From Octopus bimaculoides (lineage: Eukaryota), in the NCBI RefSeq assembly GCF_001194135.2, contig NC_069003.1, forward strand, positions 24,474,220 through 24,511,683: DNA of 37,464 bases. The letters run 5' to 3'. Positions 3,095-36,612 of the stretch are shown one piece after another (positions within the stretch are counted from its first letter, which is position 1; each line of letters opens with the position of its first letter). The translations under genes and the position numbers were made by a program. The notes below the pieces were generated by a model. The model saw only the letters and a program-made list of their open reading frames with translations. It searched no databases and was not told the origin of the DNA.

Positions 3095-3305
3095 CCTTTC
3101 TACTAAAGGCACAAGGCCCCAAATTTGTGGGGAGACGAGTCGATTACATCGACCCCAATGTTTCACTGATACTAAATTCATCGATGCCGAAAGGATGAAA
3201 GATAAAGTCCACATCGGTGGAATTTGGACACAGAACGTAGCAGCAGACGAAATACCGCTAAGCATTTAGTCCGGCATGCTAACGATTCTGCCATCTCACC
3301 GCCTT
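3095..3305 (-). mobile_element. tRNA-derived SINE (family 1)
   Basis: Minus-strand head AAGGCGGTGAGATGGCAGAATCGTTAG (A box), degenerate B box, conserved body GGGGTCGATGTAATCGAC, (ATT)n tail embedded in (TAA)n. Confidence 0.85.
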
Positions 3306-3437
3306 AATAACACTAATAATAATTATTATAACAATAATAATAGTAATAATAATAATTATTATTATTATAACAATAATAATAGTAATAATAATAATTATTA
3401 TTATTATTACTACTACTACTGCTACTACTACGACTAC
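3306..3437. repeat. (TAA/TTA/CTA)n microsatellite mosaic
   Basis: Directly visible trinucleotide repeats. Confidence 0.9.
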
Positions 3438-5997: not shown

Positions 5998-6430
5998 TAG
6001 AGAAATTAAGGCCAATAGACCAGATATAGTTGTCAAAGATCATGAAGGAAAAAATGCTTTCTAATTGATGTATCAATACCAGCAGATGACAACGTTTCCC
6101 TAAAAGAAATGGAGAAACTTTCAAAATACAAAGACCTGGAAATAGAGGTAACTCGAATGTGGAATCTAAAAACAGAAACAATTCCAATCATAGCAGGTGC
6201 CTTAGGTATAATAAAAAAAATATTCAGACAAATACATAACAAAAACACCAGGACTTACAAGTATATATATAACATACAGAAAATTGCACTACTGGGCACA
6301 CATCCTACGCAAAACACTTTCAATACAGTAACCATAAGAGCATCACAGCAAACCACAGCACATACCCAAGGCACACAGAGCTGCGCTCGGTAGTGAAGTG
6401 AAAGCACGTTATAAAAATAAAACTACTGAA
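5998..6430 (+). mobile_element. R4/Dong-like non-LTR 3' fragment (RLE domain and 3' UTR)
   Basis: IKANRPDIVVKDHEGK..FLIDVSIPADDNVSLKEMEKLSKYKDLEIEVTRMWNLKTETIPIIAGALG is a clear PD-(D/E)xK RLE. Flanked by (TAA)n on both sides. Confidence 0.85.
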
Positions 6431-8704: not shown

Positions 8705-8992
8705 TTACGCTACAAATGATAAACAACTTTCTGGATCAGAAAAAAACTTTTTCTCGGCTACCCGGTTTCTTTTTAGTAGGGCCAACACCCCACCCCCACC
8801 TCCTGCCCGACTCGGAGAAACGTATTTCTCATAGCCGTTCAGGAGTGGGGACAGATCTCTTGACCCCTTTACTCGGGTTTCCGTTGCAACAATCGCATCC
8901 AATTTTCTTGACCTGATGTCATTTAGGAAGCGTCCTTGCTTCCAGCTAGACATCAGGCCACGAACATTTATACAACCCATGTGAATAGACAT
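8705..8992 (-). pseudogene. Truncated ORF2 APE endonuclease N-terminus
   Basis: MSIHMGCINVRGL...DAIVATETRV...GGGGVLALL...DPE are the typical APE motifs (NVRGL, ET, GV). Confidence 0.85.
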
Positions 8993-22684: not shown

Positions 22685-23317
22685 ATGAACATGTCCATTC
22701 TTGCCCTGGCTGTTTTCGCATCCGTCTTCCTTTTGGTAAACAGTTCAGTTATACCCCACGGTGAACACTATGGTGAACACTATGGAAAAGCAGGTCACGA
22801 TGAAGCCCACCACGGTGTAGCTTCTGCTGAACACGTAGCAAACAACGCCTACGCTGAACACGGTGAACATGGTGTGAAAGCCGCCTACGACGTCGGTTAC
22901 CGCAACCATGAACACGATCACGTGGACAACTATGGACACCATGAACATGACGAGGACCACGACAAACACAAGGACGACATGTTGGAAAAATACGGAAACT
23001 TTGTTGCTCACGCTGGCCACAATGCATACGGTGGTGAACACAGTGCTGTAGCTGGACACGCTGATGTGTACGGCGCCGCAGGTGGACATGGCGGATTTTC
23101 CGGTCCCGGTTATGCTGGAAATGGATTCGGTCACGGTGGTTTTGGTGGTCATGGCTTCGGAGGTCTTGGTGGCCACGGCGGTTTTGGTCATGGTGGTTTT
23201 GGTGGCCATGGTGGTTTTGGTGGTCACGGTGGTCACGGTTTTGGTGGACATGGTTTTGCTGGACACGGTTATGGTGGACATGGTGGTTTTGGTGGCTATG
23301 GCGGATACGGTCATTAA
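22685..23317 (+). CDS. Secreted His/Gly-rich structural protein A (210 aa), similar in composition to squid histidine-rich beak proteins
   Basis: Signal peptide MNMSILALAVFASVFLLVNS, His/Asp/Glu-rich block, then GHGGFG-type repeats. About 33 His (16%). Intact paralog at 32106-32849; acceptor upstream and AATAAA downstream. Confidence 0.93.
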   Translation: MNMSILALAVFASVFLLVNSSVIPHGEHYGEHYGKAGHDEAHHGVASAEHVANNAYAEHGEHGVKAAYDVGYRNHEHDHVDNYGHHEHDEDHDKHKDDMLEKYGNFVAHAGHNAYGGEHSAVAGHADVYGAAGGHGGFSGPGYAGNGFGHGGFGGHGFGGLGGHGGFGHGGFGGHGGFGGHGGHGFGGHGFAGHGYGGHGGFGGYGGYGH

Positions 23318-23332
23318 AAATAACTTTGTAAA

Positions 23333-23411
23333 AATAAATTCTCTTATTTCTATCACACTTTACATCCCAAAAAGATGAACCGTATCGATTTACTACCTGT
23401 TGTTGAATAAA
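23333..23411 (+). terminator. Candidate polyadenylation signals of gene A
   Basis: AATAAA at 23333-23338 and 23406-23411. The second (AATAAACG) has a counterpart in gene B at 32017-32022. Confidence 0.6.
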
Positions 23412-23656
23412 CGGGTGTTTTCACCCAAGTTGTACGTATTAAATATCTGTTTTGTTTTTATTATTACATTTATTTCATATTAGCTGGATGGCCTCTTGGT
23501 TAGGAAGACACACCTACGAGCTAAGAGTTAATTTCTTCACATCTATTTAATTTTTAATGGATGTATTCTTGGTTAGGGAAACACAGCTTCGAACTAAGAA
23601 CTAAATTCTTCACATTTATTTCCACCGCTCTTACGTCTTTAGATTCATTCACGTCT

Positions 23657-23888
23657 AATTTCATTATTGCCCAAAAGGGGCTAAACATAGAGGGGACAAA
23701 CAAGGACAGACAAAGGGATTAAGTCGATTACATCGACCCCAGTGCGTAAATGGTTCTTAATTTATCGACCCCGAAAGGTTGAAAGGCAAAGTCGACCTCG
23801 GCGAAATTTGAACTCAGAACGTAGCGGCAGACGAAATACCGCTAAGCATCTCGCCCGGCGTGCTAACGTTTCTGCCAGCTCACCGCCT
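23657..23888 (-). mobile_element. Young family 1 SINE with 17-bp TSD
   Basis: Near-consensus head. TAGATTCATTCAC(G/A)TCT at 23640-23656 and 23889-23905. Confidence 0.9.
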
Positions 23889-24032
23889 TAGATTCATTCA
23901 CATCTTTCATCCCACATTACCGACACTTGTCACGGACCCTCTATAAAATAAGTTTCGGTAACTTTACTCGTGTTGCTTTTTAACCCCAGGTCAACCACTA
24001 TATAGAATTCCTGTTCTGACTATTACATCTAT

Positions 24033-24345
24033 TCGGTTTACGAATTTAATTCGTTCCTGAAGGCCGTTCGTCACTCGAAACGCTCGTAAACCGAAACTAT
24101 TTTTCCCATAGGAAATTCAAAACAAAACACGGCGAATTCGAACAGGGATGTGCACTGAGCGAAAGCTAGACAGCAACTGACGTTCTCCCGCTGATACTCC
24201 CAGTTTGTCGCGCCAACCATTGCTGTCGGCTTGCGTGTTCGTTACTCCAGACACATTTCATCACCCGAGACATTTTATGTACGAAAACTTGCTCATAGAT
24301 CGATTTGTTCGTGATGGTAGGCGTTCGTAAACTGAAGTTCCACGG
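24033..24345. mobile_element. Tigger-like MITE
   Basis: Right end reads (reverse complement) TA-CCGTGGAACTTCAGTTTACGAACG, like Tigger TIRs. Left end TCGGTTTACGAATTTAATTCGTTCC is partly eroded. Confidence 0.6.
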
Positions 24346-24780
24346 TAGTACTTTTCTTTTAGGATGGTAAGATGTGGTTTAAGAGAATCGTAACTATCAT
24401 GTGTGTGTGTGTGTGTGTGTGTGTTGTACGTATATGTGTATGTTTATATGCATGCCTGTGTATGTATAAACGAATGTAAGTAATAAGTATGTATGCATAT
24501 GTGTGTATATATGTATGTATGTACGTGTGTATGCGAGTATGTATAGATGGATGTATGAGTATATTAGTCGTCGATATACATTTGTGAAGGATATGAGAAT
24601 CGTTCAGGAAGCCGACAAGCTGTTACCTTATAAAGAAATTTCATGGAGATATTTTTGTGCACAAAATTACGCACAATCCCTTGTCAATCTCACCGTCAGA
24701 AAAATTGAGTCATTTGTCAATGGGAAAGATGTAACCAACGACGTTATTGTTCACCCATTGCGATATTAAATAAATAGCTA

Positions 24781-26415
24781 ACACAAAGTCCTGAGTAGAT
24801 ATAATCGACTATTCTCAGCCACTATATTTTATCGACCCTGGAGGGTTGAAAGACAACGGTGACGTTTACAGTATTCGAATTCAGAATGTAATGAGTCAGA
24901 ATAAATACCCCAAGTCATTTTTCCGACGCTCTGACGATTCTACCAATCCGCCAGCCGGAAAATATTTATAATGGTTTCTGATTTATGCACAAGGTTAGCA
25001 ATTCTGAAGGGAAATAATTAGTTGATATCATCTAAATGATTGTTTACTTTACTTTATCGACCCAGAAGAGGTGTAAAGCAAGATTGACCTCGGCGGAATT
25101 TGAACGCAGAACGTAAAGGCGGGCGAAATGTCCCTAAGCATTTTGTCCGGCGTTTCTAACGATTCTGCTAGCTAACCGCCTTAATAATAGTTTCAAATTT
25201 TAGTACATGGCCAGCAATTTAGTGGGAGGTGAGTAAGTCGATTACATCTATCCCAGCGCTCAACTGGTACTGGTACTAATTTTAACGATACTGAAAGGGA
25301 AAAAAACAAAGTCAACCTCGGTAGAATTTGAACTCAGAACGTAAAGACGGACGAAATAAATGTCGCCAAGCATTTTACCCAGCATGCTAACGATTCTGCC
25401 AACTCACCGCCTTGATAATCCTTTCTACTGGAAGCACAAGGCCTCAAATATGGGGGAAGGGATTAAGTCGATTACATCGACCCCAGTTTTTCAGTGGTAC
25501 TTATTTAATTGATCCCGAAAAGATAAAAGGCAAAGTCGACCTCGGCAGAATTTGAACTCAGAGCGTGAAGACTACAAAGCATTTTGCCCGGCGTATTAAC
25601 AATTCTGCCCGCTCGCCGCCTTGCTAATTCTTTCTAATGGAAGCACAAGGCCTCAAATTTAGGCGAAGGGATTAAATCGATTACATCGAGCCCTGTGCGT
25701 AACTGGTAGTTATTTAATCGACCCTGATAGGATAAAGGCAAAGTCGACCTCGGCGGAATTTGAACTCAGAACGTAGTGACAGAAGAAATACCACTAAGCA
25801 TTTGGCCCGGCGTGCTAACGATTCTGCCAGCTCGCCGCCTTAATAATAATGTTAATTCATTCTAATTTTGGCACAAATCTACCAAATTTATGGGGAGGGG
25901 TAGTCGATTTTATTAACCCCAGGAATTGGTTGGTGCTTATGTTGTTGTTGTTGTTGGCACTCCGTTGCTTACGACGTCGAGGGTTCCAGTTGATCCGATC
26001 AACGGAACAGCCTGCTCGTGAAATTAACGTGCAAGTAGCTGAACACTCCACAGACACGTGTACCCTTAACGTAGTTCTCGGGGATATTCAACGTGACACA
26101 GAGTGACAAGGTTGGCCCTTTGAATTACAGGCACAACAGAAACAGGAAGTAAGAGTGAGAGAAAGTTGTGGTGAAAGAGTACAGCAGGGTTCGCAACCAT
26201 CCCCTGCCGGAGCCTTGTGGAGCTTTAGGTGTTTTCACCCAATAAACACTCACAACGCCCGGTCTGGGAATCGAAACCGCGATCCTATGACTGCGAGTCC
26301 GCTGCCCTAACCACTGGGCCATTGCGCCTCCACTGGTGTTTATATTATCGACACCAGAAAGAAGAAAAGCAAAGCTGATCTTGGCGGCGTGATCTGAGCT
26401 CAGGACGTAAAGAGC
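24781..26415 (-). repeat. Head-to-tail array of six family 1 SINE copies
   Basis: Units at about 24781-24958, 24965-25182, 25183-25413, 25415-25622, 25623-25840 and 25850-26415 (the last is interrupted), each with the GAATTTGAACTCAG-type core. Confidence 0.8.
25941..26333 (-). mobile_element. tRNA-derived SINE (family 4) with (CAA)n tail and 10-bp TSD
   Basis: Head GTGGAGGCGCAATGGCCCAGTGGTTAG...GGTTTCGATTCCC. TGGTG(C/T)TTAT at 25931-25940 and 26334-26343. Second copy at 30476-30744. Confidence 0.88.
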
Positions 26416-26630
26416 ATCTAGATATGTATATATCAATCGAGCCTTTCTCAGTTTCCGTCTACTAATCTATTCACAAGGCTTTGGTCGGCCCGGGGTTATA
26501 GTAGGATATACCATGCACTGGTAATGAACCCAGAACCATATAGTTGAGAAGCAAGCTTCTCAACACACAGTCACGCCTGCACCTTACATATACATTTCAC
26601 GAAAACAGTAATAATATTTTAATCCCTAAC

Positions 26631-28034
26631 TTATTCAGACATCACGGAATTAATTCAAGTTACCTGTAACCTCTACAATTGCAAGAGATGCTCAAAGGGT
26701 GGTCATTAGCTTCCATTAGTACGGTGAACCGTTGTTTGGGCTACATTGGCCAAAGTGTCCTGTAGGATTCCTGCACATGCTGAACCAATTTCTTCCGGAA
26801 GAGCCATCAGTGTAGCCGGCTCTCTGCGATACAAGATATCCTTTTGGGCACCCCATAATTAAAAGTAAAAGGAGAACGTTCGGGAAAACCAGCGGCAAAT
26901 CTTCGTCCTATCCAGTGTCCTTAAAAATTCCCATCCAGGTACGTTCGCATGTTCAGCAGTAATAGGGTGATACGCCAGCTGAGTGGACTGGAGCAACGTG
27001 AAATATAGTGTCTTGCTCAAGGACACAACGCGTCGCCGGGAATTGAACTCACGACCTTATGATCATGAGCCGAATGCCCCTAACCATTAAGCCACGCGCC
27101 CTCACGTCTAGGTACGCTTGACCAGTGAAAATACCTTCAAAGAAAAATAGTCCTATTAAGCCGTTAATGACACTCCACACCAGAGTTTAATTACCGGTGA
27201 ATTAACTATGTTGTCTACCAACAAACAAGACATTTCTGGTGCCCAATAAGTAGAATTATGTCCGTTCACTGTTCCATTTAGCTTAAATTGTGTTTCATCA
27301 CACCACACAATCGTCTGTGCAAACTTTTCCTCCTCGTCTACCATGCGTTGAAAGTACGAGTACTCACAAAACTCGATTCTTCGATCAGGGTCGTCATCGT
27401 TAATTGCATGTAATAATCTTGCAACGTAAACTTACCACTTAGCTCTTTTAGGAACGTGCCATATGCTTGAAGTGTTAATTTCTATCTCTTGTGGTGAGGG
27501 CCTGAAATGTTCCAACACCATAGCCGCTGAAGCAGCGTTCGTTATTGTACGAGGTCTGCTGAATTTTCTCTTTTGCATACGGTAGCATATGTTTCGAATT
27601 TATCACGAATCCGTGTCACTGTCAGGCGCGTTGGAAATTCTGTTCGAAATTCAGGCCTCCACTGTCTTTGAATTTTAACAACATCCGCAAATTTGAAATA
27701 TCACTTTAGAATGGTTTTTGCGTTCCTTAAATGACAACCGTACCTCTGTCATTTTGTCACAGTTACTCACAATAGCATCAAGAATTATAAGAAAGTCTCC
27801 AGTTTTTTAATCTCAAAATAATGTCCATTTACTATTTCATATATCAACAATTGATCAAGTGAAATCGAACTTTTTCAATATCGGTATTTTTAAAATGAAA
27901 ATCTTTGGAAAATATTTCATTAATTTTGTTTTTAAGCCAACATGATAAAAATGACAAAAAAAAAATATTACCTTGTGTCCTGTGGTGTCCGAATAAAAAA
28001 AAATGATTGTGTAAATCCCGTGATGTCTGAATAA
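26631..28034 (-). mobile_element. Degraded Tc1/mariner-superfamily (DD37D/maT-like) DNA transposon
   Basis: 17-bp inverted repeats TTATTCAGACATCACGG at 26631-26647 and 28018-28034. Minus-strand remnants run MTEVRLSFKERK (27752), PTRLTVTRIRDKFET, DDDPDRRIEFCE, IVWCDETQFKLNGTVN, WCGVS, GLIGLFFFEG, HWIGRR, FEHLL. Confidence 0.8.
26974..27105 (-). mobile_element. Family 3 SINE 5' half nested in the mariner-like element
   Basis: Reverse complement GGCGCGTGGCTTAATGGTTAG...GAGTTCAATTCCC...TGTGTCCTTGAGCAAG. Confidence 0.85.
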
Positions 28035-28737
28035 ACTTGGTATTAAAATATNNNNNNNNNNNNNNNNNNNNNNNNNNNNNNNNNNNNNNNNNNNNNNNNN
28101 NNNNNNNNNNNNNNNNNNNNNNNNNNNNNNNNNNNNNNNNNNNNNNNNNNNNNNNNNNNNNNNNNNNNNNNNNNNNNNNNNNNNNNNNNNNNNNNNNNNN
28201 NNNNNNNNNNNNNNNNNNNNNNNNNNNNNNNNNNNNNNNNNNNNNNNNNNNNNNNNNNNNNNNNNNNNNNNNNNNNNNNNNNNNNNNNNNNNNNNNNNNN
28301 NNNNNNNNNNNNNNNNNNNNNNNNNNNNNNNNNNNNNNNNNNNNNNNNNNNNNNNNNNNNNNNNNNNNNNNNNNNNNNNNNNNNNNNNNNNNNNNNNNNN
28401 NNNNNNNNNNNNNNNNNNNNNNNNNNNNNNNNNNNNNNNNNNNNNNNNNNNNNNNNNNNNNNNNNNNNNNNNNNNNNNNNNNNNNNNNNNNNNNNNNNNN
28501 NNNNNNNNNNNNNNNNNNNNNNNNNNNNNNNNNNNNNNNNNNNNNNNNNNNNNNNNNNNNNNNNNNNNNNNNNNNNNNNNNNNNNNNNNNNNNNNNNNNN
28601 NNNNNNNNNNNNNNNNNNNNNNNNNNNNNNNNNNNNNNNNNNNNNNNNNNNNNNNNNNNNNNNNNNNNNNNNNNNNNNNNNNNNNNNNNNNNNNNNNNNN
28701 NNNNNNNNNNNNNNNNNNNNNNNNNNNNNNNNNNNNA

Positions 28738-28834
28738 CAGAGACGTATACACACCAACACTGGTTGTCAAGTGGTAGCGGGTGACAAATACAGACACAGG
28801 CACAAACACACACACACAGGCACGCATACAAACA

Positions 28835-28877
<43 letters not shown>

Positions 28878-28970
28878 GGCTTCTTTCAGTTTCCATCAAC
28901 CAAATCGGCTCGAGGATATAGAACTTTTCGAGTTGCCACACAGTGGAACTGAACCCGGAACCACACAGTG
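28738..28970 (-). mobile_element. Family 2 SINE fragment
   Basis: GACGTATACACACC...(AT)n...CGGGCTTCTTTCAGTTTCC...GGAACTGAACCCGG. Confidence 0.7.
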
Positions 28971-29212
28971 ACGCTTAAGTTCTTCATTCTCTACGAAGTA
29001 TAGTATAGGCCATCGACGACTTTTCTCCATTTTTCTCGACAGTGGGCTATCTTCAAGGCCACTCCCTCAGTAAGATAGGGAGAAACCCCTAAAGCAAGGC
29101 CTTCTTTTCTAAATTTTACTGGTTTTGAATTGTCATCGTTGCTTCTGTAACTTTCTGTTTTTGTCTTATGGTAAGGGTGTTGGCCTTACGGAGACCCATT
29201 TTTACATCTGGA

Positions 29213-29327
29213 AAGTAGTCTGGCTCTCCTCTAACCTAGCAGTATGTGACGCCATACCAGGAGCTTGAACTCCACATGCTTACATCTCGGGTCATTGAAG
29301 CTCACAAGTTACCACACAGCTACAAGG
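29213..29327 (-). mobile_element. Probable RTE-clade LINE 5' UTR fragment
   Basis: Reverse complement CCTTGTAGCTGTGTGG...GAGCTTCAATGACCC...GGAGTTCAAGCTCCTGGTATGG...GGAGAGCCAGAC resembles, from recall, RTE 5' ends. Confidence 0.45.
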
Positions 29328-29430
29328 ACTAGACCATGCTGTATGAAACTAATAATACAAATAATTTAATCTCAACGAGATCCTGCAATTCCTGTTTGCA
29401 ATTACTATCTGCAATTATTAATAATGATAA

Positions 29431-29883
29431 TTTCAAATTTTGTCATAAGACCAACAATTTCGTGGGGAGGGGGTACATCGATTATATTGACCTCAGTACT
29501 CAACTGGTACTTATTTTATTGACCCCGTATGGATGAAAAGCAAAGTCGGCCTCGGCAGAATTTGAACTCAGAACGCAAAGACGGACCAAAAGTCGCTAAG
29601 CATTTCTCCTATCGTGCTAACAATTCTGCCAGATTGTCGCTTTTTTTTTTGCAATTACCAATAATAATCCTTTCTACTAAAAGCACAAGGCCTGAAATTT
29701 TGGCGGAAGGGGACTAGTCGATTACATCGACCCCAGCGTTTCGCTGGTATTTAATTTATCGACTCTAAAAAGATGAATGCAAAGTCGACCTCGGCAGAAT
29801 TTGAACTCAGAATGTGAAGACGGAGAGAATGTCGCCAAGTATTTTTTTTCCTGCGAGCTAACGGTTCTGCTAGCTTGCAGCCT
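29431..29883 (-). mobile_element. Two tandem family 1 SINEs
   Basis: Units at 29431-29640 and 29667-29883, each with the family core. Confidence 0.8.
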
Positions 29884-30475
29884 TTTTTGCAATTACTACT
29901 AATACAAATGATTTAATCTTAACGAGACACTGCAATTACAATTTGCTCCACCTGTTATAAATACTCAAGTGAACTAGACTATCTACAGCCTGCCAGAAGA
30001 TGTCGGTGATATTATTAACCCATTGCTTGCCATGAACCCTATTTGGGGATCTGCTAAAAACAGTCTCACTGACGGTTGTTCGTTGTATTTAAAGGGAATT
30101 GCTTATGTATATTGTATTTGCAGAGGTGTATTTAACAATATTTAGTAGTTAAAGTTTGTCATTATTATCCCTGGCTAATTCTAGGGGACATTTTATGTCA
30201 TAAATTGCAATTTTTGAACTACAAAAATATTGACTGTTTTGAAAACGCTTTTGTTTTTTCTTTTGCATTTCCCATTTATATCATTCATTGATATTTCACA
30301 CACATCCGCATTTGATACTATAGTTTCAAATAAAATAGAATGTTTATTATTGCAATTGAATATAACAGGNNNNNNNNNNNNNNNNNNNNNNNNNNNNNNN
30401 NNNNNNNNNNNNNNNNNNNNNNNNNNNNNNNNNNNNNNNNNNNNNNNNNNNNNNNNNNNNNNNNNNNNNNNNNNN

Positions 30476-30744
30476 TAACGTAGTTCTCGGGGGATATTCA
30501 GCGTGACACAGTGTGACAGGGCTGACCCTTTGAATTACAGGCACGACAGAAACAGGAAGTAAGGGTGAGAGAAAGTTGTGGTGGAAGAGTACAGCAGCGT
30601 TCGCCACCATCCCCTGCCGGAGCCTCGTGGAACTTTTAGGTGTTTTCGCTCAATAAACACTCACAGCGCCCGGTATGGGAATCGAAACCGCGATCCAATG
30701 ACCGCGAGTCCGCTGCCCTAACCACTGGGCCATTGCGCCTCCAC
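30476..30744 (-). mobile_element. Family 4 SINE, 3' end lost in gap
   Basis: High identity to the head-side 270 bp of 25941-26333. Confidence 0.88.
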
Positions 30745-32016
30745 AAATAGTCGACAGATATAAACACTATTCTACATATGCTGTACATCTGCCTTGTGTG
30801 GACTCTCACTCCTTCTCTTTGACGTTTACAGATTTATAGTATGAAGTGTCGTTTCGATGGTCAGATATATTGCTTTTTTCTCCCTAATTTGGGTTTAGAA
30901 GAAGAACATCCAGTGAGAATTAATTAATGTCGAGGATCATTTTAACGCGCATTTTGTTTGAGTCGTTTGTCTCTCTTGGAGTATTATGCATAAAGAGCAA
31001 GGTATTCAGAGATTATCTAGATACGGAAGTCAGTCTATCGCAGATCATTCAAATTACTTCTTACAAAAGATTTTAAATGCACTGTCACCAAATCAAATAC
31101 ATGCCATATATGCAACAGTGAACTGTTATTAAGTAAGTACTTGGGAACAACGTTATCAATCAGGCTATTATCAGTTAATAATTTCTTCATCGTAATACAC
31201 CGTAAAAATAGAAGTGTGGTTTGTTGAATGGTCCAGGCATTCATCTGGAGTCCTAAGTTAGGAATTGAAATCTACTATCGACATATTACTGGATTTTAGA
31301 GCAGATTTTATTCTCTATTTATTCGGCTTACTTACTGTCACAAACAAGCACCAGATTTATGCCCATGTCTTGTGAGAAGACTCATATCTTTCAATGAATT
31401 ATCTGAGAAGTGGTCTTTAAAAGCCACTAAGGACTCATGAAGCATTTACATTCAGAATTCATACTGGAGCGTCACCAGACTTAAAAAGTCTGTAAGCTTG
31501 TAATTCTGAATAAAACAAAGTAAGCATCTATACTATAATAATGAAAACAGCTTATTAATTGGTTTGTAGTATGCAACTATTACTAAAGGTAAGCAATTAT
31601 TAAAGCCTACAGTGTCTAGAAAATTCTTTAAGATTCTAATCTATATATATTTTTCTCAAAACGTGATTTTTCAAACAATCTTTGCTTTTCGAGATCTCAG
31701 ATACAGACAGTTTTAATTTACTGCAGGGTTGCATTTTCATTTAACACTCTCTCTTACACTTTCTGACGCTACTTTTCTACAGGCATACCAGAAAGAACAT
31801 TGCCCCAAACCATAAGTTTCATCTCGCATCAACCAAATTATGGTGATTTCAGTATGTTTGTTGGATGTTGTTGAAGAAGAAAGTGGTTTTAATTTATATA
31901 CGTAAATAGTACCAAATATAAAATTGTTATGATATGAAAAAATAATATACAGAAGAAGAAAAAAAGAAGAAAAAAGACAAGAAATAATTGCCAGCAACAT
32001 TGACAGTAATTTTACG

Positions 32017-32022
32017 TTTATT
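32017..32022 (-). terminator. Candidate polyadenylation signal of gene B
   Basis: TTTATT on +, 84 nt past the stop codon, in the same AATAAACG context as gene A. Confidence 0.55.
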
Positions 32023-32105
32023 TAATTACAAACAGCAACAAATTGTATTAATTATTGGTATTTTTCTTTAGAATTAGGGAGTTCTCATTTTTTTAAAAGT
32101 CATGT

Positions 32106-32849
32106 TTAATAATGGCCATGTCCATAGCCATATCCATCAAAGCCATGACCAGCAAAACCGTTTCCTGCAAGAGCATGTCCATCGTAGCCATGTCCACCAT
32201 AACCATATCCACCATAACCTAAACCGCCATAGCCGTATCCACCGTGCCCAGCAAGTCCACCGTGGCCAACAACACCACCGTGACCAACAGCACCACCGTG
32301 ACCAACAACACCACCGTGACCAGCAAAGCCACCGTGACCGGCAAGGCCACCGTGACCTGCTAGAGCACCACGACCAGCGAAACCGTATCCGCCAAAACCT
32401 CCGAAACCTACACGTCCATCAAAACCGGGACCAGCATATGCAGCATGTCCACCTTCAGCACCGTATGCATCAGCGTGTCCAGCTACAGCACTGTGTTCAC
32501 CACCGTATGCATTGTGGCCAGCGTGAGCAACAAAGTTTCCGTATTTTTCCAACATGTCGTCCTTGTGTTTGTCGTGGTCCTCGTCATGTTCATGGTGTCC
32601 ATAGTTGTCCACGTGATCGTGTTCATGGTTGCGGTAACCAACGTCGTAGGCGGCTTTCACACCGTCTTCACCGTGTTCAGAGTAGGCGTTGTTTGCTACG
32701 TGTTCAGCAGAAGCTACACCTTTGTGGGCTTCATCGTGGCCTTCTTTTCCATAGTGTTCACCATAGTGTTCACCGTGGGGTAAAACTGAACTGTTTACCA
32801 GAAGGAAGACGGATGCGAAAACAGCCAGGGCAAGAATGGACATGTTCAT
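32106..32849 (-). CDS. Secreted His/Gly-rich structural protein B (247 aa), inverted paralog of gene A
   Basis: 7 differences from A in the first 135 aa. Different Gly-rich tail with seven GHGGxx hexapeptides and GYG repeats. About 32 His (13%). Acceptor and 28-nt 5' UTR are conserved with A. Confidence 0.93.
   Translation of the reverse strand: MNMSILALAVFASVFLLVNSSVLPHGEHYGEHYGKEGHDEAHKGVASAEHVANNAYSEHGEDGVKAAYDVGYRNHEHDHVDNYGHHEHDEDHDKHKDDMLEKYGNFVAHAGHNAYGGEHSAVAGHADAYGAEGGHAAYAGPGFDGRVGFGGFGGYGFAGRGALAGHGGLAGHGGFAGHGGVVGHGGAVGHGGVVGHGGLAGHGGYGYGGLGYGGYGYGGHGYDGHALAGNGFAGHGFDGYGYGHGHY
32232..32357 (-). repeat. Coding 18-bp tandem repeat (GHGGxx x7)
   Basis: Repeated CCACCGTG(A/G)CC on +, period 18 nt. 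Confidence 0.9.
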
Positions 32850-32999
32850 GATGGCAGTTTATAGAGGACGTGGAGATCTGAAAATAAGGGGAAAAAAGTT
32901 GTTAATTAAGGTGATTATAAGAGGCATTAATAATGTTAATTAAAAGATATTCAAGTTTAAAACAACTATTATATCATTGATCAATTATACTGTAACATT

Positions 33000-33217
33000 A
33001 ATTTCAAATTTTAGAAGGCCAATGCTTTCAGGAGGGGTTAAATCGATTACATATACCCCAGGGTTCAACTTGTTCTTATTTTATCGACCCCGAAAGGATG
33101 AAAAGCAAAATCGGCCTTGGTGGCATTTGAATTCAGAACGTGAAGACAGACAAAATGACGCAAAGCATTTTGATAGGCGTGCTAACTATTCTGCCAGCTG
33201 GTCGCCCAAATTATTCA
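33000..33217 (-). mobile_element. Family 1 SINE in gene B intron
   Basis: Flanked by GTAACATT (32992-32999) and GTAATATT (33218-33225). Gene A has the empty site. Confidence 0.85.
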
Positions 33218-35384
33218 GTAATATTGGGAAAAGAATTGAAAAATTAAGAAACTTTCCGCTTTATCTATTCGTCTTTATGTGCCAGACATCTCTCGTCTTC
33301 AAATCTCATTATATTACCTAATGCTTTCACATTGTTTCTGTCTTAATGTCTCAGTCAAAAGAAGAACTTTAGAGCTTATGACGTCTTTCAGAGCTTCTGC
33401 AACTGGTAAAAGAAGTTATCTACAAACTGGATATCTTCCGGAATGCTTGCATCAAGGTGGAAGCCATTGAAGCAGTAAGGAGCTAGGTGATGGCGTTTAA
33501 CTAGGACAGGAATTAAATTTCCCAGCAAAAATATGAACAACAGAAATGGTCCTTCAGAAAAGGCTTCTTTCTTCGGTTTCCAGTTTCTTTTAGAAGGTTT
33601 TGATCAATCAGAAGCAATACTATAGTGAAGACATTTGTCCATGTCCAACAAGCACTAATCATATGTAAAGTTTAGAGAACTAGTAGGTACTATTGCTAAT
33701 GATGGGAGACAAGCGCATTTCACTGATGAGACTATAGTGATAATTATATGTTCTGTTGTATGTTGCCAATATTTTCACCAATTGTTATTATGTACCCTAT
33801 TCGATGGAACGATGTGCATGCATATATAAATGTGTGTGTGTGTGTGTGTGTGTCTATGCATGGTATGTACGCTTATATGAATGTATGTATAAAACAGATA
33901 TTCATATTTATTTTTATGCTCAGTTATAATAGAAACAATTTTACATTAATTTGATGCGTTACAGTATACTTTTGTAGAGTACAATGGCTTAGCAGGTCGA
34001 AACTTCGAGGTCACTGTCAACAGCAGTCTTGTTTAAGAATATATACCTGTGTGTGTGTGTGTATGTGTAAAGAGAGAGAGATAGGGGGAGACAGAGACAG
34101 AGAAATAAAGACAGAGCAGACAAACAAACAGAAAGAAAGAAAGACAGACTGATTGATAAATACATACATATATAGATGGTTATGCAATAAAATTTAGAGT
34201 ACTCAATACATACAGTAGAGCGTTAGGGATAAAACATTGTAATTAATTGTTACCTTTTCAGAGCAAGTGAAATAATCTTCAGGTGACACAATAAAGCGGG
34301 TTATAAAATATCCGAGTCGTACATGGCCGTTTCCAGTATTTCATTACCATGTTAGGAGCGTAATTCATTAAATATGAATATTGTTTGGGTGAGTTATTTC
34401 CTTTGAGTAATTAGGCATTGTGGGGATAAAGACTCAAGACGAAGGAGGGGGGTTAAACTACTATGAAGAAACGGATGTGGAAAGTTAGAGCTGAATTTAT
34501 AAGATACTAACTTAAAAGCCGCCAAAGCTAGCTCCTGTGGAGGGCTCTTCGTTGGGCCTTCTGCCCAACATTGACACTTCATGCATTGAGTATATATTAA
34601 ATTTTATTAAACTTGCCCAATATTTTTCAAGCAATGAACAATTTTCGTCAAAGCAATGATACAATTTGTCGACTGGGAAATTATTGCAAAGCTGCATGAC
34701 AAACATTTTTTGTCTTCCCATTCGGGGCGTCAGTACATTTTTTTTTGTCTAACCTCTTTCTTTCTTTTTCTCTCTGTCTCTTTCTGTTGATTGTTTTCAA
34801 CCAACACCATTAACAATACCACCGCCATCGCCACCACAACTGCCATATACACACCATTCAGGCATTTTTTTTTTCCTTAAGGTGTCAGAAAGTTTTGTAT
34901 TAAAAAATCATAAAGGTTTCTTTCAATTTCATGTTTTGTATGAACAAACAATATTTACGAATTAGAAAAATATGTGAAGTTAGAATATCCCAAATGAATA
35001 TATTATTCAAAGGAATTCCAACTCTGTTTTTATGTTGTAATTATATTCTTATAATATTAATGTTGGATATAGAGAAGTACTTGTCGAAGTGGAAACGGGC
35101 ACTTTTTCTCACGTCATAACACAGAATGTTTTGTCCCATTTTTGTACTGTGGTACAAAAATGGGACATAATGGTTTGTTGGACAAAATGACACAGTTTTG
35201 GTTTGGTGGAGGTGAATTCTGCTTCATATATAATCTCTTCAGTGTTCAAAAACTACTTAAGATAGAATGCGTTTATAATTCTGAATGATGTGCAGTTAGC
35301 TTTAATTAATTTAGTTGGCTTTATGTTACGAATTTGTTCATGTTCTTAATACAGATGTATTGCAGTTTCATCTTGTATATACTC

Positions 35385-35660
35385 TTTTACTTTTTTACTT
35401 GTTTCAGTCATTCGACTGCGGCCATGCTGGAGCACCACCTTTAGTCGAGCAGATCGACCCCAGGACTTATTCTTTGTAAGCCTAGTACTTATTCTATCGG
35501 TCTCTTTTGCCGAACCGCTAAGTTACGGGGACGTAAACACACCAGCATCGGTTGTCAAGCGATGTTGGGGAGACAAATACAGACACAGAAACACATATAT
35601 ATAGATATACATATATACGACGGGCTTCTTTTTCAGTTTCCGCCTACCAAATCCACTCAC
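35385..35660 (-). mobile_element. Family 2 SINE, head missing
   Basis: Near-consensus 3' block and microsatellite. Another copy at 36665-36820. Confidence 0.85.
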
Positions 35661-35995
35661 AAAATTTTCTATGTCGAAGGTTGATTGGAAAATATTTATT
35701 TGTTACAGTTGAGAAAAAGTAGGAGAGAATTTGCGAGCAGTGAGACATAATTGCTACAGCCGGGAACGGTAATGAGGATAAGCTTTCACTACTTGGAAAA
35801 TATTCTCATAAGGCGCGTCTCGAATAGCCTCTGACAACGAAGTCGAGGTCCTAGCCTGCTTGACGGTTAGATGTTAGCCAGGCAGAACTGCTTGATGCTG
35901 ACAGAAGAAAAGGTGAGGGTTGGTTACTGGCTCCCAAAAACCAGTTGTTTACAGGTAGCTGAAGCTTGTTAATCTGGAAGGCAGTCCGTTTAGGG

Positions 35996-36194
35996 CAGTG
36001 GTTCTCAACTGTTTTTTTATCTATGGACCCCTTTCATTACTACTTTCCTCTGGAAGACACCCGCAGCTATTTGGAAACTAGTTTTATAGATATTTCTTTC
36101 AAAATTCCTATTTGCTTTCACACGTTCACTTGTGCAGGCTGAACTACGAATGTGAAATGTTAGAGAAAGAAACCTAGCTGTTCGTGCAATAAAT
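35996..36194 (+). mobile_element. hAT (Charlie-like) element left end; remainder in gap
   Basis: Begins CAGTGGTTCTCAAC, a typical Charlie-group TIR. The other end is not visible. Confidence 0.5.
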
Positions 36195-36612
36195 NNNNNN
36201 NNNNNNNNNNNNNNNNNNNNNNNNNNNNNNNNNNNNNNNNNNNNNNNNNNNNNNNNNNNNNNNNNNNNNNNNNNNNNNNNNNNNNNNNNNNNNNNNNNNN
36301 NNNNNNNNNNNNNNNNNNNNNNNNNNNNNNNNNNNNNNNNNNNNNNNNNNNNNNNNNNNNNNNNNNNNNNNNNNNNNNNNNNNNNNNNNNNNNNNNNNNN
36401 NNNNNNNNNNNNNNNNNNNNNNNNNNNNNNNNNNNNNNNNNNNNNNNNNNNNNNNNNNNNNNNNNNNNNNNNNNNNNNNNNNNNNNNNNNNNNNNNNNNN
36501 NNNNNNNNNNNNNNNNNNNNNNNNNNNNNNNNNNNNNNNNNNNNNNNNNNNNNNNNNNNNNNNNNACACACACACACACACACACACGCACACATATATA
36601 TATATATGTATA

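Follow-up and report, generated by a model that had tools for sequence, protein, structure and literature searches.

Two convergent paralogous genes of Octopus bimaculoides encode predicted secreted histidine- and glycine-rich diblock proteins resembling squid beak proteins in design

What hardens the beak of an octopus? Octopus beaks are made of tanned chitin-protein, and what is known in molecular terms about the hardening of cephalopod beaks derives entirely from one squid. The question is raised by a stretch of 37,464 nucleotides of the Octopus bimaculoides genome (in the following called the window), in which two genes, here designated A and B, are called on record CM046623.1 of assembly GCA_001194135.2 at approximately 24.49–24.52 Mb. 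Each of them codes for a protein with a predicted signal peptide, a non-repetitive acidic and histidine-rich block (N-block) and a tandemly repeated tail rich in Gly, His and aromatic residues. The explanation that we prefer, at a probability of about 0.5, is that A and B are secreted, disordered diblock proteins that contribute to the matrix or to the sclerotisation of a chitinous hard tissue and that can be switched by pH and possibly by metals. The first candidate for this tissue would be the beak, with the sucker lining, the radula, the gut cuticle and the stylet as alternatives.

Gene A has a single coding exon at 22685..23317 on the forward strand (210 amino acids plus stop) and gene B one at 32106..32849 on the reverse strand (247 amino acids plus stop); both are uninterrupted open reading frames (ORFs). 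Over residues 1–141 the two proteins are 92% identical. The first 21 residues, MNMSILALAVFASVFLLVNSS, have the same sequence in A (22685..22747, forward strand) and B (32787..32849, reverse strand) and consist of a hydrophobic core of 14 residues followed by a small polar c-region. Judged from this sequence, its hydropathy profile and an AlphaFold2 (AF2) model of B, in which it forms a helix, the segment is a signal peptide that would be cut after VNS or NSS. The single-sequence AF2 model, calculated for B only, has a mean predicted local distance difference test score (pLDDT) of 43.9; the signal-peptide helix, at 77–85, is the only confidently modelled segment, and the tail scores 31–38. Neither A nor B matches a Pfam family at E values up to 1, including Chitin_bind_4 (the Rebers-Riddiford domain), and a search of PDB sequences revealed no relative of either. 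Because these and the further database searches reported below were empty and because AF2 is confident for the signal peptide only, A and B probably contain no known domain and are presumably intrinsically disordered. Both lack Cys, Trp and Thr and have two Pro and approximately 32–33 His, and the mature chains contain neither an N-glycosylation sequon nor a dibasic [KR][KR] or furin-type site between the blocks. Mature A has a mass of 19.1 kDa and an isoelectric point (pI) of 6.08, with 32% Gly, 17.5% His and 10% Ala (Gly+Ala+His 59.8%); mature B has a mass of 22.8 kDa and a pI of 5.90, with 30% Gly, 14% His and 12% Ala (Gly+Ala+His 56.6%). Asp+Glu make up 11–12% of both. The initial annotation had thus correctly described two intact paralogs built from a signal peptide, a His/Asp/Glu-rich block, which is present in both copies as it was quoted, and a Gly/His/aromatic tail, without Cys and without a recognisable chitin-binding motif.

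The N-block comprises residues 22–140 (119 amino acids), encoded at 22748..23104 on the forward strand in A and at 32430..32786 on the reverse strand in B. It is non-repetitive, acidic and rich in His (17–18%), Gly (15–17%) and Ala (14–15%), with 18–20% Asp+Glu: in A there are 22 His, 21 Asp+Glu and 6 Lys+Arg, in B 20 His, 24 Asp+Glu and 7 Lys+Arg. The His residues are clustered (3 HxH, 4–5 HxxH, 4 HxxxH and 9–10 [DE]H motifs), and a poly-His/Asp/Glu core, HEHDHVDNYGHHEHDEDHDKHKDD, occupies residues 75–98 of both proteins (22907-22978 on the forward strand in A). From residue 141 to the end the proteins are repetitive. The tail of A (residues 141–210; 23105..23314, forward strand; 70 amino acids) contains 59% Gly, 16% His, 13% Phe and 6% Tyr, that of B (residues 141–247; 32109..32429, reverse strand; 107 amino acids) 47% Gly, 11% His, 9% Tyr and 9% Ala; Phe+Tyr amount to 16–19%, and there is no Lys and at most two Arg. 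Underlying the tail of A are DNA periods of 18 and 15 bp, which encode five GHGGF units (a sixth lies at residue 134), GHGF[GA] and GHGYG, including the pentapeptide run GHGFG-GHGFA-GHGYG. In B, for which Tandem Repeats Finder reports a period of 18 (7.8 copies, 84% matches) and one of 15, seven [AV]GHGG[LFVAY] hexapeptides are followed by the stretch GGYGYGGLGYGGYGYG and then by the pentapeptides GHGYD-GHALA-GNGFA-GHGFD-GYGYG-HGHY.

This distribution of residues has a marked effect on the computed charge. At pH 5 the N-block carries a net charge of about +8 in A and about +5 in B, and at pH 8.1 of about −15 and −17, respectively. For the tail the values at these two pH are +11 and about 0, and for the whole chain +15 to +19 and −14 to −17.

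That A and B are real genes and were duplicated recently is borne out by several observations. They form part of an inverted duplication of 585 nt (left arm 22535..23119, right arm 32415-32999), the arms of which are 94% identical in complementary orientation. The duplicated unit takes in 150 bp upstream of the ATG, with weaker similarity reaching to about −590, and the flanks past the unit, the 3′ untranslated regions and the tails of A and B cannot be aligned. The possibility that A and B are haplotigs or alleles was considered and is ruled out, since flanks and tails are non-homologous; the two are therefore paralogs. That the proposed frame is coding is indicated by the 21 differences in the 423 alignable nucleotides, 9 of which are synonymous in this frame where 21% are expected (binomial P = 0.02). 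A synonymous excess is seen in the proposed sense frame alone, in which the ratio of the proportions of nonsynonymous and synonymous differences (pN/pS) between A and B is 0.36, as compared with 0.5–2.2 in all other frames. Every coding indel between A and B is a multiple of 3, and at the stop-codon frequency of the window an open frame of 247 codons is expected by chance with P ~3e-6. The synonymous divergence (dS) between A and B, 0.11, is smaller than the pS of 0.17 for the neighbouring gene between O. bimaculoides and Octopus sinensis, so that the duplication, or the event that last homogenised the copies, is to be regarded as young. Within the duplicated unit there is one stretch, codons 71–127 (22895-23066 and 32468-32639; ~171 nt), in which A and B agree at every nucleotide, whereas the coding and upstream DNA around it differs by 5–10%; if the differences were placed uniformly, this would have a probability of ~4e-4. 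It suggests gene conversion or an unusually strong constraint, at the nucleotide level, over the poly-His/acidic core.

Both copies also have conserved flanking signals. A polypyrimidine tract plus CAG, identical in both copies, is found 28 nt before the ATG (22644..22656 on the forward strand in A, 32878..32890 on the reverse strand in B); the neighbouring gene at 1254 has the same TTTCAG/ATC arrangement 15 nt before its ATG. From its sequence the tract is likely a 3′ splice site, which would imply an upstream non-coding exon; alternatively, it could be an initiator-like TCAGATC. On the 3′ side the polyadenylation signal AATAAA is conserved between the copies (23406..23411, forward strand, in A, where another AATAAA is present at 23333-23338; 32017..32022, reverse strand, in B), and AATAAACG, ~90 nt past the stop codon, is the sole element conserved between the 3′ flanks of A and B.

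The genes are convergent, tail to tail, with the 3′ ends facing each other and the stop codons 8.8 kb apart, as the initial annotation had it in speaking of an inverted pair. This arrangement rests on a gapped scaffold. Runs of N in the window include 20059-20842, 28052-28736, 30370-30475 and 36195-36565, among others, and microsatellites of the (AT)n, (CA)n or TATG type lie at the borders of most assembly gaps. Two of the gaps, 28052..28736 and 30370-30475, are intergenic and lie between A and B, the former beginning 4.7 kb past the stop codon of A and the latter lying 1.6 kb past that of B. Since all of A is contained in the contig 20843-28051 and all of B in the contig 30476-36194, the two reading frames come from continuous sequence; since the scaffold joins these two contigs across the gaps, it is on the gaps that copy number, the spacing of 8.8 kb and the orientation of A and B to each other depend. 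A third copy was found neither in the window nor within 5.4 kb outside it, where gaps may hide further copies.

These data bear on the least probable of the explanations considered here, namely that A and B are non-functional, in that they are ORFs open by chance or in decay within low-complexity DNA, or else a single locus doubled by an artefact of assembly. In its favour it can be said that the exact proteins A and B, although their genes are listed in the gene-position index, are absent from a collection of 15 billion proteins which does include the products of the neighbouring gene and of its O. sinensis ortholog, that the two genes are on different contigs, and that GGN-rich DNA leaves several frames open. 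For example, an antisense ORF of 249 amino acids (32102-32851, forward strand) extends across B. As a gene this ORF was rejected (its pN/pS is 1.77, its frame is broken in A and it has no signal peptide), and it is a compositional by-product of the His/Asp/Glu/Gly codons. What makes this explanation very improbable is that the two copies, although diverged by ~5–10% and with many indels in their tails, are both intact, with an open non-repetitive head of 420 nt, in-frame indels, a synonymous excess in the sense frame only, a signal peptide and conserved flanking signals. The differences in tails, 3′ flanks and wider flanks speak against a collapsed or duplicated allele.

With which known proteins can A and B be compared? 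The obvious candidates are the squid histidine-rich beak proteins (HBPs), among which are DgHBP-1, DgHBP-2 and DgHBP-3 of Dosidicus gigas and a cluster of 10 genes on chromosome 12 of Doryteuthis pealeii. The comparison was made with the published descriptors of these proteins and with the coacervating squid peptide pepHBP-1 (GHGLYGAGFAGHGLHGFAGHGLY). Squid HBPs have masses of 15–18 kDa and pI values of 6.0–6.5, contain 20–35 mol% Gly, 16–19 mol% Ala and 10–16 mol% His (Gly+Ala+His >50%), and are composed of a non-repetitive Ala/His-rich N-terminal domain and a C-terminal domain of tandem pentapeptides, namely GHGXY, GHGX′Y (X′ being Gly or Ala) and GAGFA/GFA; His is the sole titratable residue of the repeats, which gives rise to pH-triggered coacervation (PMC11931252, PMC9999432). 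A and B follow the same two-domain plan, with non-repetitive residues 22–140 and then 15-/18-bp tandem repeats to the end, and agree in Gly (30–32%), His (14–17.5%), Gly+Ala+His (57–60%) and pI (5.9–6.1). The motif GHGG[FLVAY] occurs 6 times in A, always as GHGGF, and 7 times in B, GFA once in A and 3 times in B, and GNGFA once in B. In Smith-Waterman alignments with pepHBP-1 the tail of A scores 81 (shuffles 55±6) and that of B 77 (shuffles 52±6), and the observed scores were reached by 0/2000 and 5/2000 composition-matched shuffles, respectively, although shuffling is a weak and lenient null for periodic sequences. Residues 224–247 of B align over all of pepHBP-1 with 15 of 23 positions identical, and the N-blocks do not score above shuffles against this peptide. 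As far as the sequences allow a judgement, the design grammar of the tails would thus appear to match that of HBPs beyond mere composition.

How such a protein might work can be sketched from its charge profile. In an acidic secretory compartment (pH about 5–6) the ~32–33 His residues would be protonated and the chain would be a soluble polycation. Once the protein is released and the pH rises to neutral or to that of seawater, its tail would become uncharged and could condense via Phe/Tyr stacking and His-Tyr contacts. For the repeats of squid HBPs such condensation has been shown experimentally. The N-block would at the same time turn into a strong polyanion (−15 to −17), and near pH 6–7 the molecule would be a self-complementary block polyampholyte. 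The head could tune droplet formation or solubility, or it could chelate Zn, Cu or Ca through its clusters of His plus Asp/Glu. In a last step, the condensate may be cured by His-catechol or Tyr-derived cross-links during tanning. Of all this, the sequence itself shows that the genes are intact and duplicated, and it gives their composition, computed charges and repeat grammar, from which secretion, disorder, phase behaviour, the binding of metals, cross-linking and the tissue are inferred.

It should be noted, however, that quite a number of findings weigh against a beak-type matrix protein of the HBP kind. Ala, at 10–12%, is below and the mass, at 19–23 kDa, above the range of squid HBPs, and the 11–12% Asp+Glu are extra. 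GHGxY is found 0 times in A and 2 times in B, the register of the repeats being mostly that of a hexapeptide, and the position taken by Tyr in the squid repeats is often occupied by Phe, Leu or Val. With a net charge of −14 to −17 at the pH of seawater, the full-length protein might remain in solution instead of coacervating. A sequence match to known protein sets did not turn up: an exhaustive HMMER search with residues 1–140 against 1.84 billion representative proteins gave 0 matches, so that orthology is unproven, where a 92%-identical relative would, in a local HMMER control, score 268 bits. Exact look-ups of the full products and of those starting at Met98 returned the genome record or nothing, and no transcriptome assembly. 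The beak-type matrix reading of the initial annotation has fared unevenly, being supported by the HBP descriptors, the two-domain plan and the pepHBP-1 scores and weakened by the missing homolog, the rarity of GHGXY and the low Ala content. Its remark that the acidic poly-His block is foreign to the described squid architecture holds, since the published description of HBPs contains no such block.

The other searches were equally silent. When full-length B was searched against a database of 5.8 billion clusters, no match scored among the 8000 candidates to which the list was limited and which had probably been drawn in by Gly-rich words. A squid HBP query (pepHBP-1 plus HBpep) gave 1 candidate and none that scored. 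An O. sinensis contig is syntenic to the window only from 2 to ~12 kb and ends ~10 kb short of A and B; weak tblastn matches on this contig proved to be a poly-Asp microsatellite and were dismissed. No earlier description of A or B was found in the literature, which was searched with peptide strings and for octopus beak proteomes. Since the 15-billion-protein collection lacks even A and B, such silence says little about other cephalopods. The two genes are probably missing from public protein sets and may be missing from the released annotations, and a published similarity search could for this reason have ended without HBP-like genes in this genome.

The search in question is that of Albertin et al. 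(2022), who reported 10 HBP genes on chromosome 12 of D. pealeii (Dpe12) with expression in the buccal mass. They looked for HBPs and suckerins in O. bimaculoides without identifying them, and viewed both families as decapodiform novelties, which adds to the points against an HBP-type protein. Supplementary Table 9 of the same study assigns Obi23 and Dpe12 to the linkage group CephLG32 (Albertin et al., 2022). Going by accession order among 30 records alone, CM046623.1 is plausibly chromosome 23, and if it is Obi23, A and B are on the very chromosome, among the thirty of the octopus, that matches the squid HBP chromosome. A literature search for an accession-to-chromosome mapping of CM046623.1 found none, and a preprint points to a chr16/chr17 naming discrepancy in this O. 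bimaculoides assembly, which again tells against the case. The chromosome match is therefore a lead and no evidence of orthology. That A and B are true octopus orthologs of the squid HBP cluster, on the chromosome homologous to Dpe12 and missed by the published gene sets, is a tentative proposal and rather doubtful; convergence with the squid HBPs is equally possible as orthology.

If the chemistry proposed for A and B is correct, the tissue may still be a different one. The proteins could belong to the sucker cuticle, radula, oesophageal cuticle, stylet, or egg chorion or stalk and have converged with squid HBPs, an account that we regard as unlikely, though as the likeliest of the alternatives to the preferred one. 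No tissue is specified by the sequence, homology to the squid proteins was not detected, the GGYGYGGLGYGGYGYG stretch in the tail of B is suckerin-M2-like, and the jaws of polychaetes, the cuticle of insects and the hard tissues of squid have each come to a Gly/His/aromatic low-complexity design on their own (PMC9999432). The possible location on the octopus chromosome that is paired with the squid HBP chromosome and the alignment of the last 24 residues of B along the whole of pepHBP-1 speak against this account. Whether beak or another tissue, a structural role is challenged by two further explanations, both of which assign A and B to a different trade.

A and B could be host-defence precursors in which a Gly/His-rich polypeptide active against microbes or fungi follows upon a signal peptide and an anionic pro-region, and for which insect holotricin-3 and tenecin-3, plant shepherins and the Gly/Tyr-rich NLP/CNC peptides of nematodes provide analogues. 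A tail with 47–59% Gly, 11–16% His and aromatics behind an acidic head would suit such a precursor, as would a lineage-restricted family with no homologs in searches and a young duplication with fast-diverging tails, which is typical of immune effectors. Yet the dibasic or furin-type site that would release the tail is lacking between the blocks, the tail, without Lys and with at most two Arg, is uncharged at the pH of seawater or haemolymph, 70–107 amino acids are long for such peptides, and a review records no Gly/His-rich antimicrobial peptide for cephalopods; we consider a role in defence improbable. More improbable still appears to be a non-structural, secreted protein for metal handling or buffering, in which the His/Asp/Glu block would store or scavenge Zn, Cu or Ni. 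The dense His clusters of the N-block beside 21–24 acidic residues are what such a protein would need, but it leaves unexplained the long Gly/His/aromatic tail, which matches phase-separating and structural proteins, and neither Pfam nor PDB shows a similarity to known metal-binding families.

Besides A and B the window contains a third gene at 1254-2003 on the forward strand, 20 kb from the pair, which encodes a predicted secreted orphan protein of 249 amino acids. In this protein a signal peptide and possibly a small beta-rich segment precede a low-complexity middle part rich in Tyr, Asn, Pro and Ser, and the C-terminus has 5 Cys. Its sole relative in the databases is the 'uncharacterized protein' XP_036355429.1 of Octopus sinensis (91% identical, pN/pS 0.23), and its AF2 model has a pLDDT of 39.1. 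A Rebers-Riddiford-like motif was suspected in this protein and abandoned, as Pfam and PDB searches did not support it. It may be another lineage-specific matrix protein. Short ORFs at 27156-27344 (reverse strand), 8705-8992 (reverse strand) and 6109-6393 (forward strand) resemble remnants of mariner/Tc1-type transposases and of retrotransposons, with no significant Pfam match. The window contains at least 12 copies (70–80% identical) of an element of ~170 bp that resembles a short interspersed nuclear element (SINE), and this element is found in the O. sinensis contig as well. One copy (22211-22379 and 33038-33206, respectively) lies 300–470 bp upstream of each of A and B, inside the duplicated unit, in its part of weaker similarity; further copies are at 3137-3306, 10718-11156, 13658-13813, 16760-16868, 23712-23892, 25072-25842 and 29707-29845. 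ARAGORN reports no tRNA gene for this element.

With A and B there is a concrete candidate for the missing octopus component of beak hardening. Should they prove to be expressed in the epithelium that forms the beak, the view of how the HBP family evolved would have to change. If, in particular, they are true orthologs, the family would be older than the octopod-decapod split rather than a decapodiform innovation, and the octopus lineage would have added an acidic poly-His block, which would make of an HBP a charge-inverting block polyampholyte or a metal-binding coacervate former. No beak protein of such a design has been described. A natural diblock that combines an acidic His block with a neutral His/aromatic block would moreover be a model of charge patterning in pH- or metal-triggered coacervation, and it bears on the HBP-peptide delivery materials that are already in use (PMC11931252). 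Even with expression in another tissue, A and B would constitute a new, octopus-specific family of secreted low-complexity proteins.

A comparison with the known systems shows where A and B belong. Behind a signal peptide, holotricin-3, tenecin-3 and the shepherins have GGH/GHG repeats with ~50–60% Gly and ~15–20% His; these short processed peptides contain few aromatics and no acidic His-rich head. A and B, in contrast, have no processing site, and their tails have 0–2 basic residues and are neutral at pH 8.1, which sets them apart from the Gly/His-rich antifungal peptides. Octopuses have no ring teeth. The suckerins, from the sucker ring teeth of squid, consist of many alternating M1 and M2 modules, of which M1 is a Pro-flanked beta-sheet of Ala/His/Thr and M2 is rich in Gly and Tyr. 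With these A and B share the signal peptide, the Ala/His-rich and Gly/Tyr-rich segments and, in B, the M2-like GGYGYGGLGYGGYGYG stretch, but they have one head and one tail instead of alternating modules, two Pro and no Thr, and the suckerin module pattern was not found in them.

Other Gly/His-dominated proteins are NVJP-1, which is Zn-hardened, and the Cu-binding multi-tasking protein of Glycera, both of which are secreted, disordered proteins of unmineralised jaws. NVJP from Nereis virens contains 36 mol% Gly, 27 mol% His, 9.1 mol% Asp, 6.4 mol% Glu and 7.3 mol% Tyr with GYGHG/GYGGH motifs, shifts to beta-structure as the pH rises and forms fibrils with Zn. A and B are similar to it in Asp, Glu and Tyr, and GYGGH is found in A and both GYGHG and GYGGH in B. 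They differ from the annelid proteins in having 14–17.5% His as against 27–40%, and the annelid proteins are without a clean split into an acidic and a neutral block. The likeness to NVJP can only be convergent; in terms of composition, NVJP is nevertheless what may be called the nearest published analogue of the acidic His block. To our knowledge, no metal has been described for an octopus beak. Squid beaks are metal-free (PMC9999432).

It is with the squid HBPs that A and B have most features of design in common: both are small (15–23 kDa) and secreted, as is predicted for A and B, with a pI of about 6 and more than 50% Gly+Ala+His, and in both a non-repetitive His/Ala-rich N-terminal domain is followed by a C-terminal domain of tandem repeats. 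These repeats include units of the GHGGY type and GFA/GxGFA; in them a His flanked by Gly precedes an aromatic or hydrophobic residue, and His is essentially the sole residue that can be titrated. Both are found as clustered paralogs, possibly on homologous chromosomes. This does not mean that they are the same proteins. The repeat of A and B is mostly a hexapeptide, [GAV]GHGG followed by a hydrophobic residue, canonical GHGXY is nearly absent, and Ala is 10–12 as against 16–19 mol%; their N-terminal domain has 21–24 Asp+Glu, including the poly-His/Asp/Glu core, with which the chain would be strongly anionic at seawater pH; and there is no detectable sequence homology to a family that has been reported absent from octopus. 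While membership of the HBP family is thus unproven, A and B are best filed as HBP-like in design, within the class of secreted Gly/His/aromatic structural proteins.

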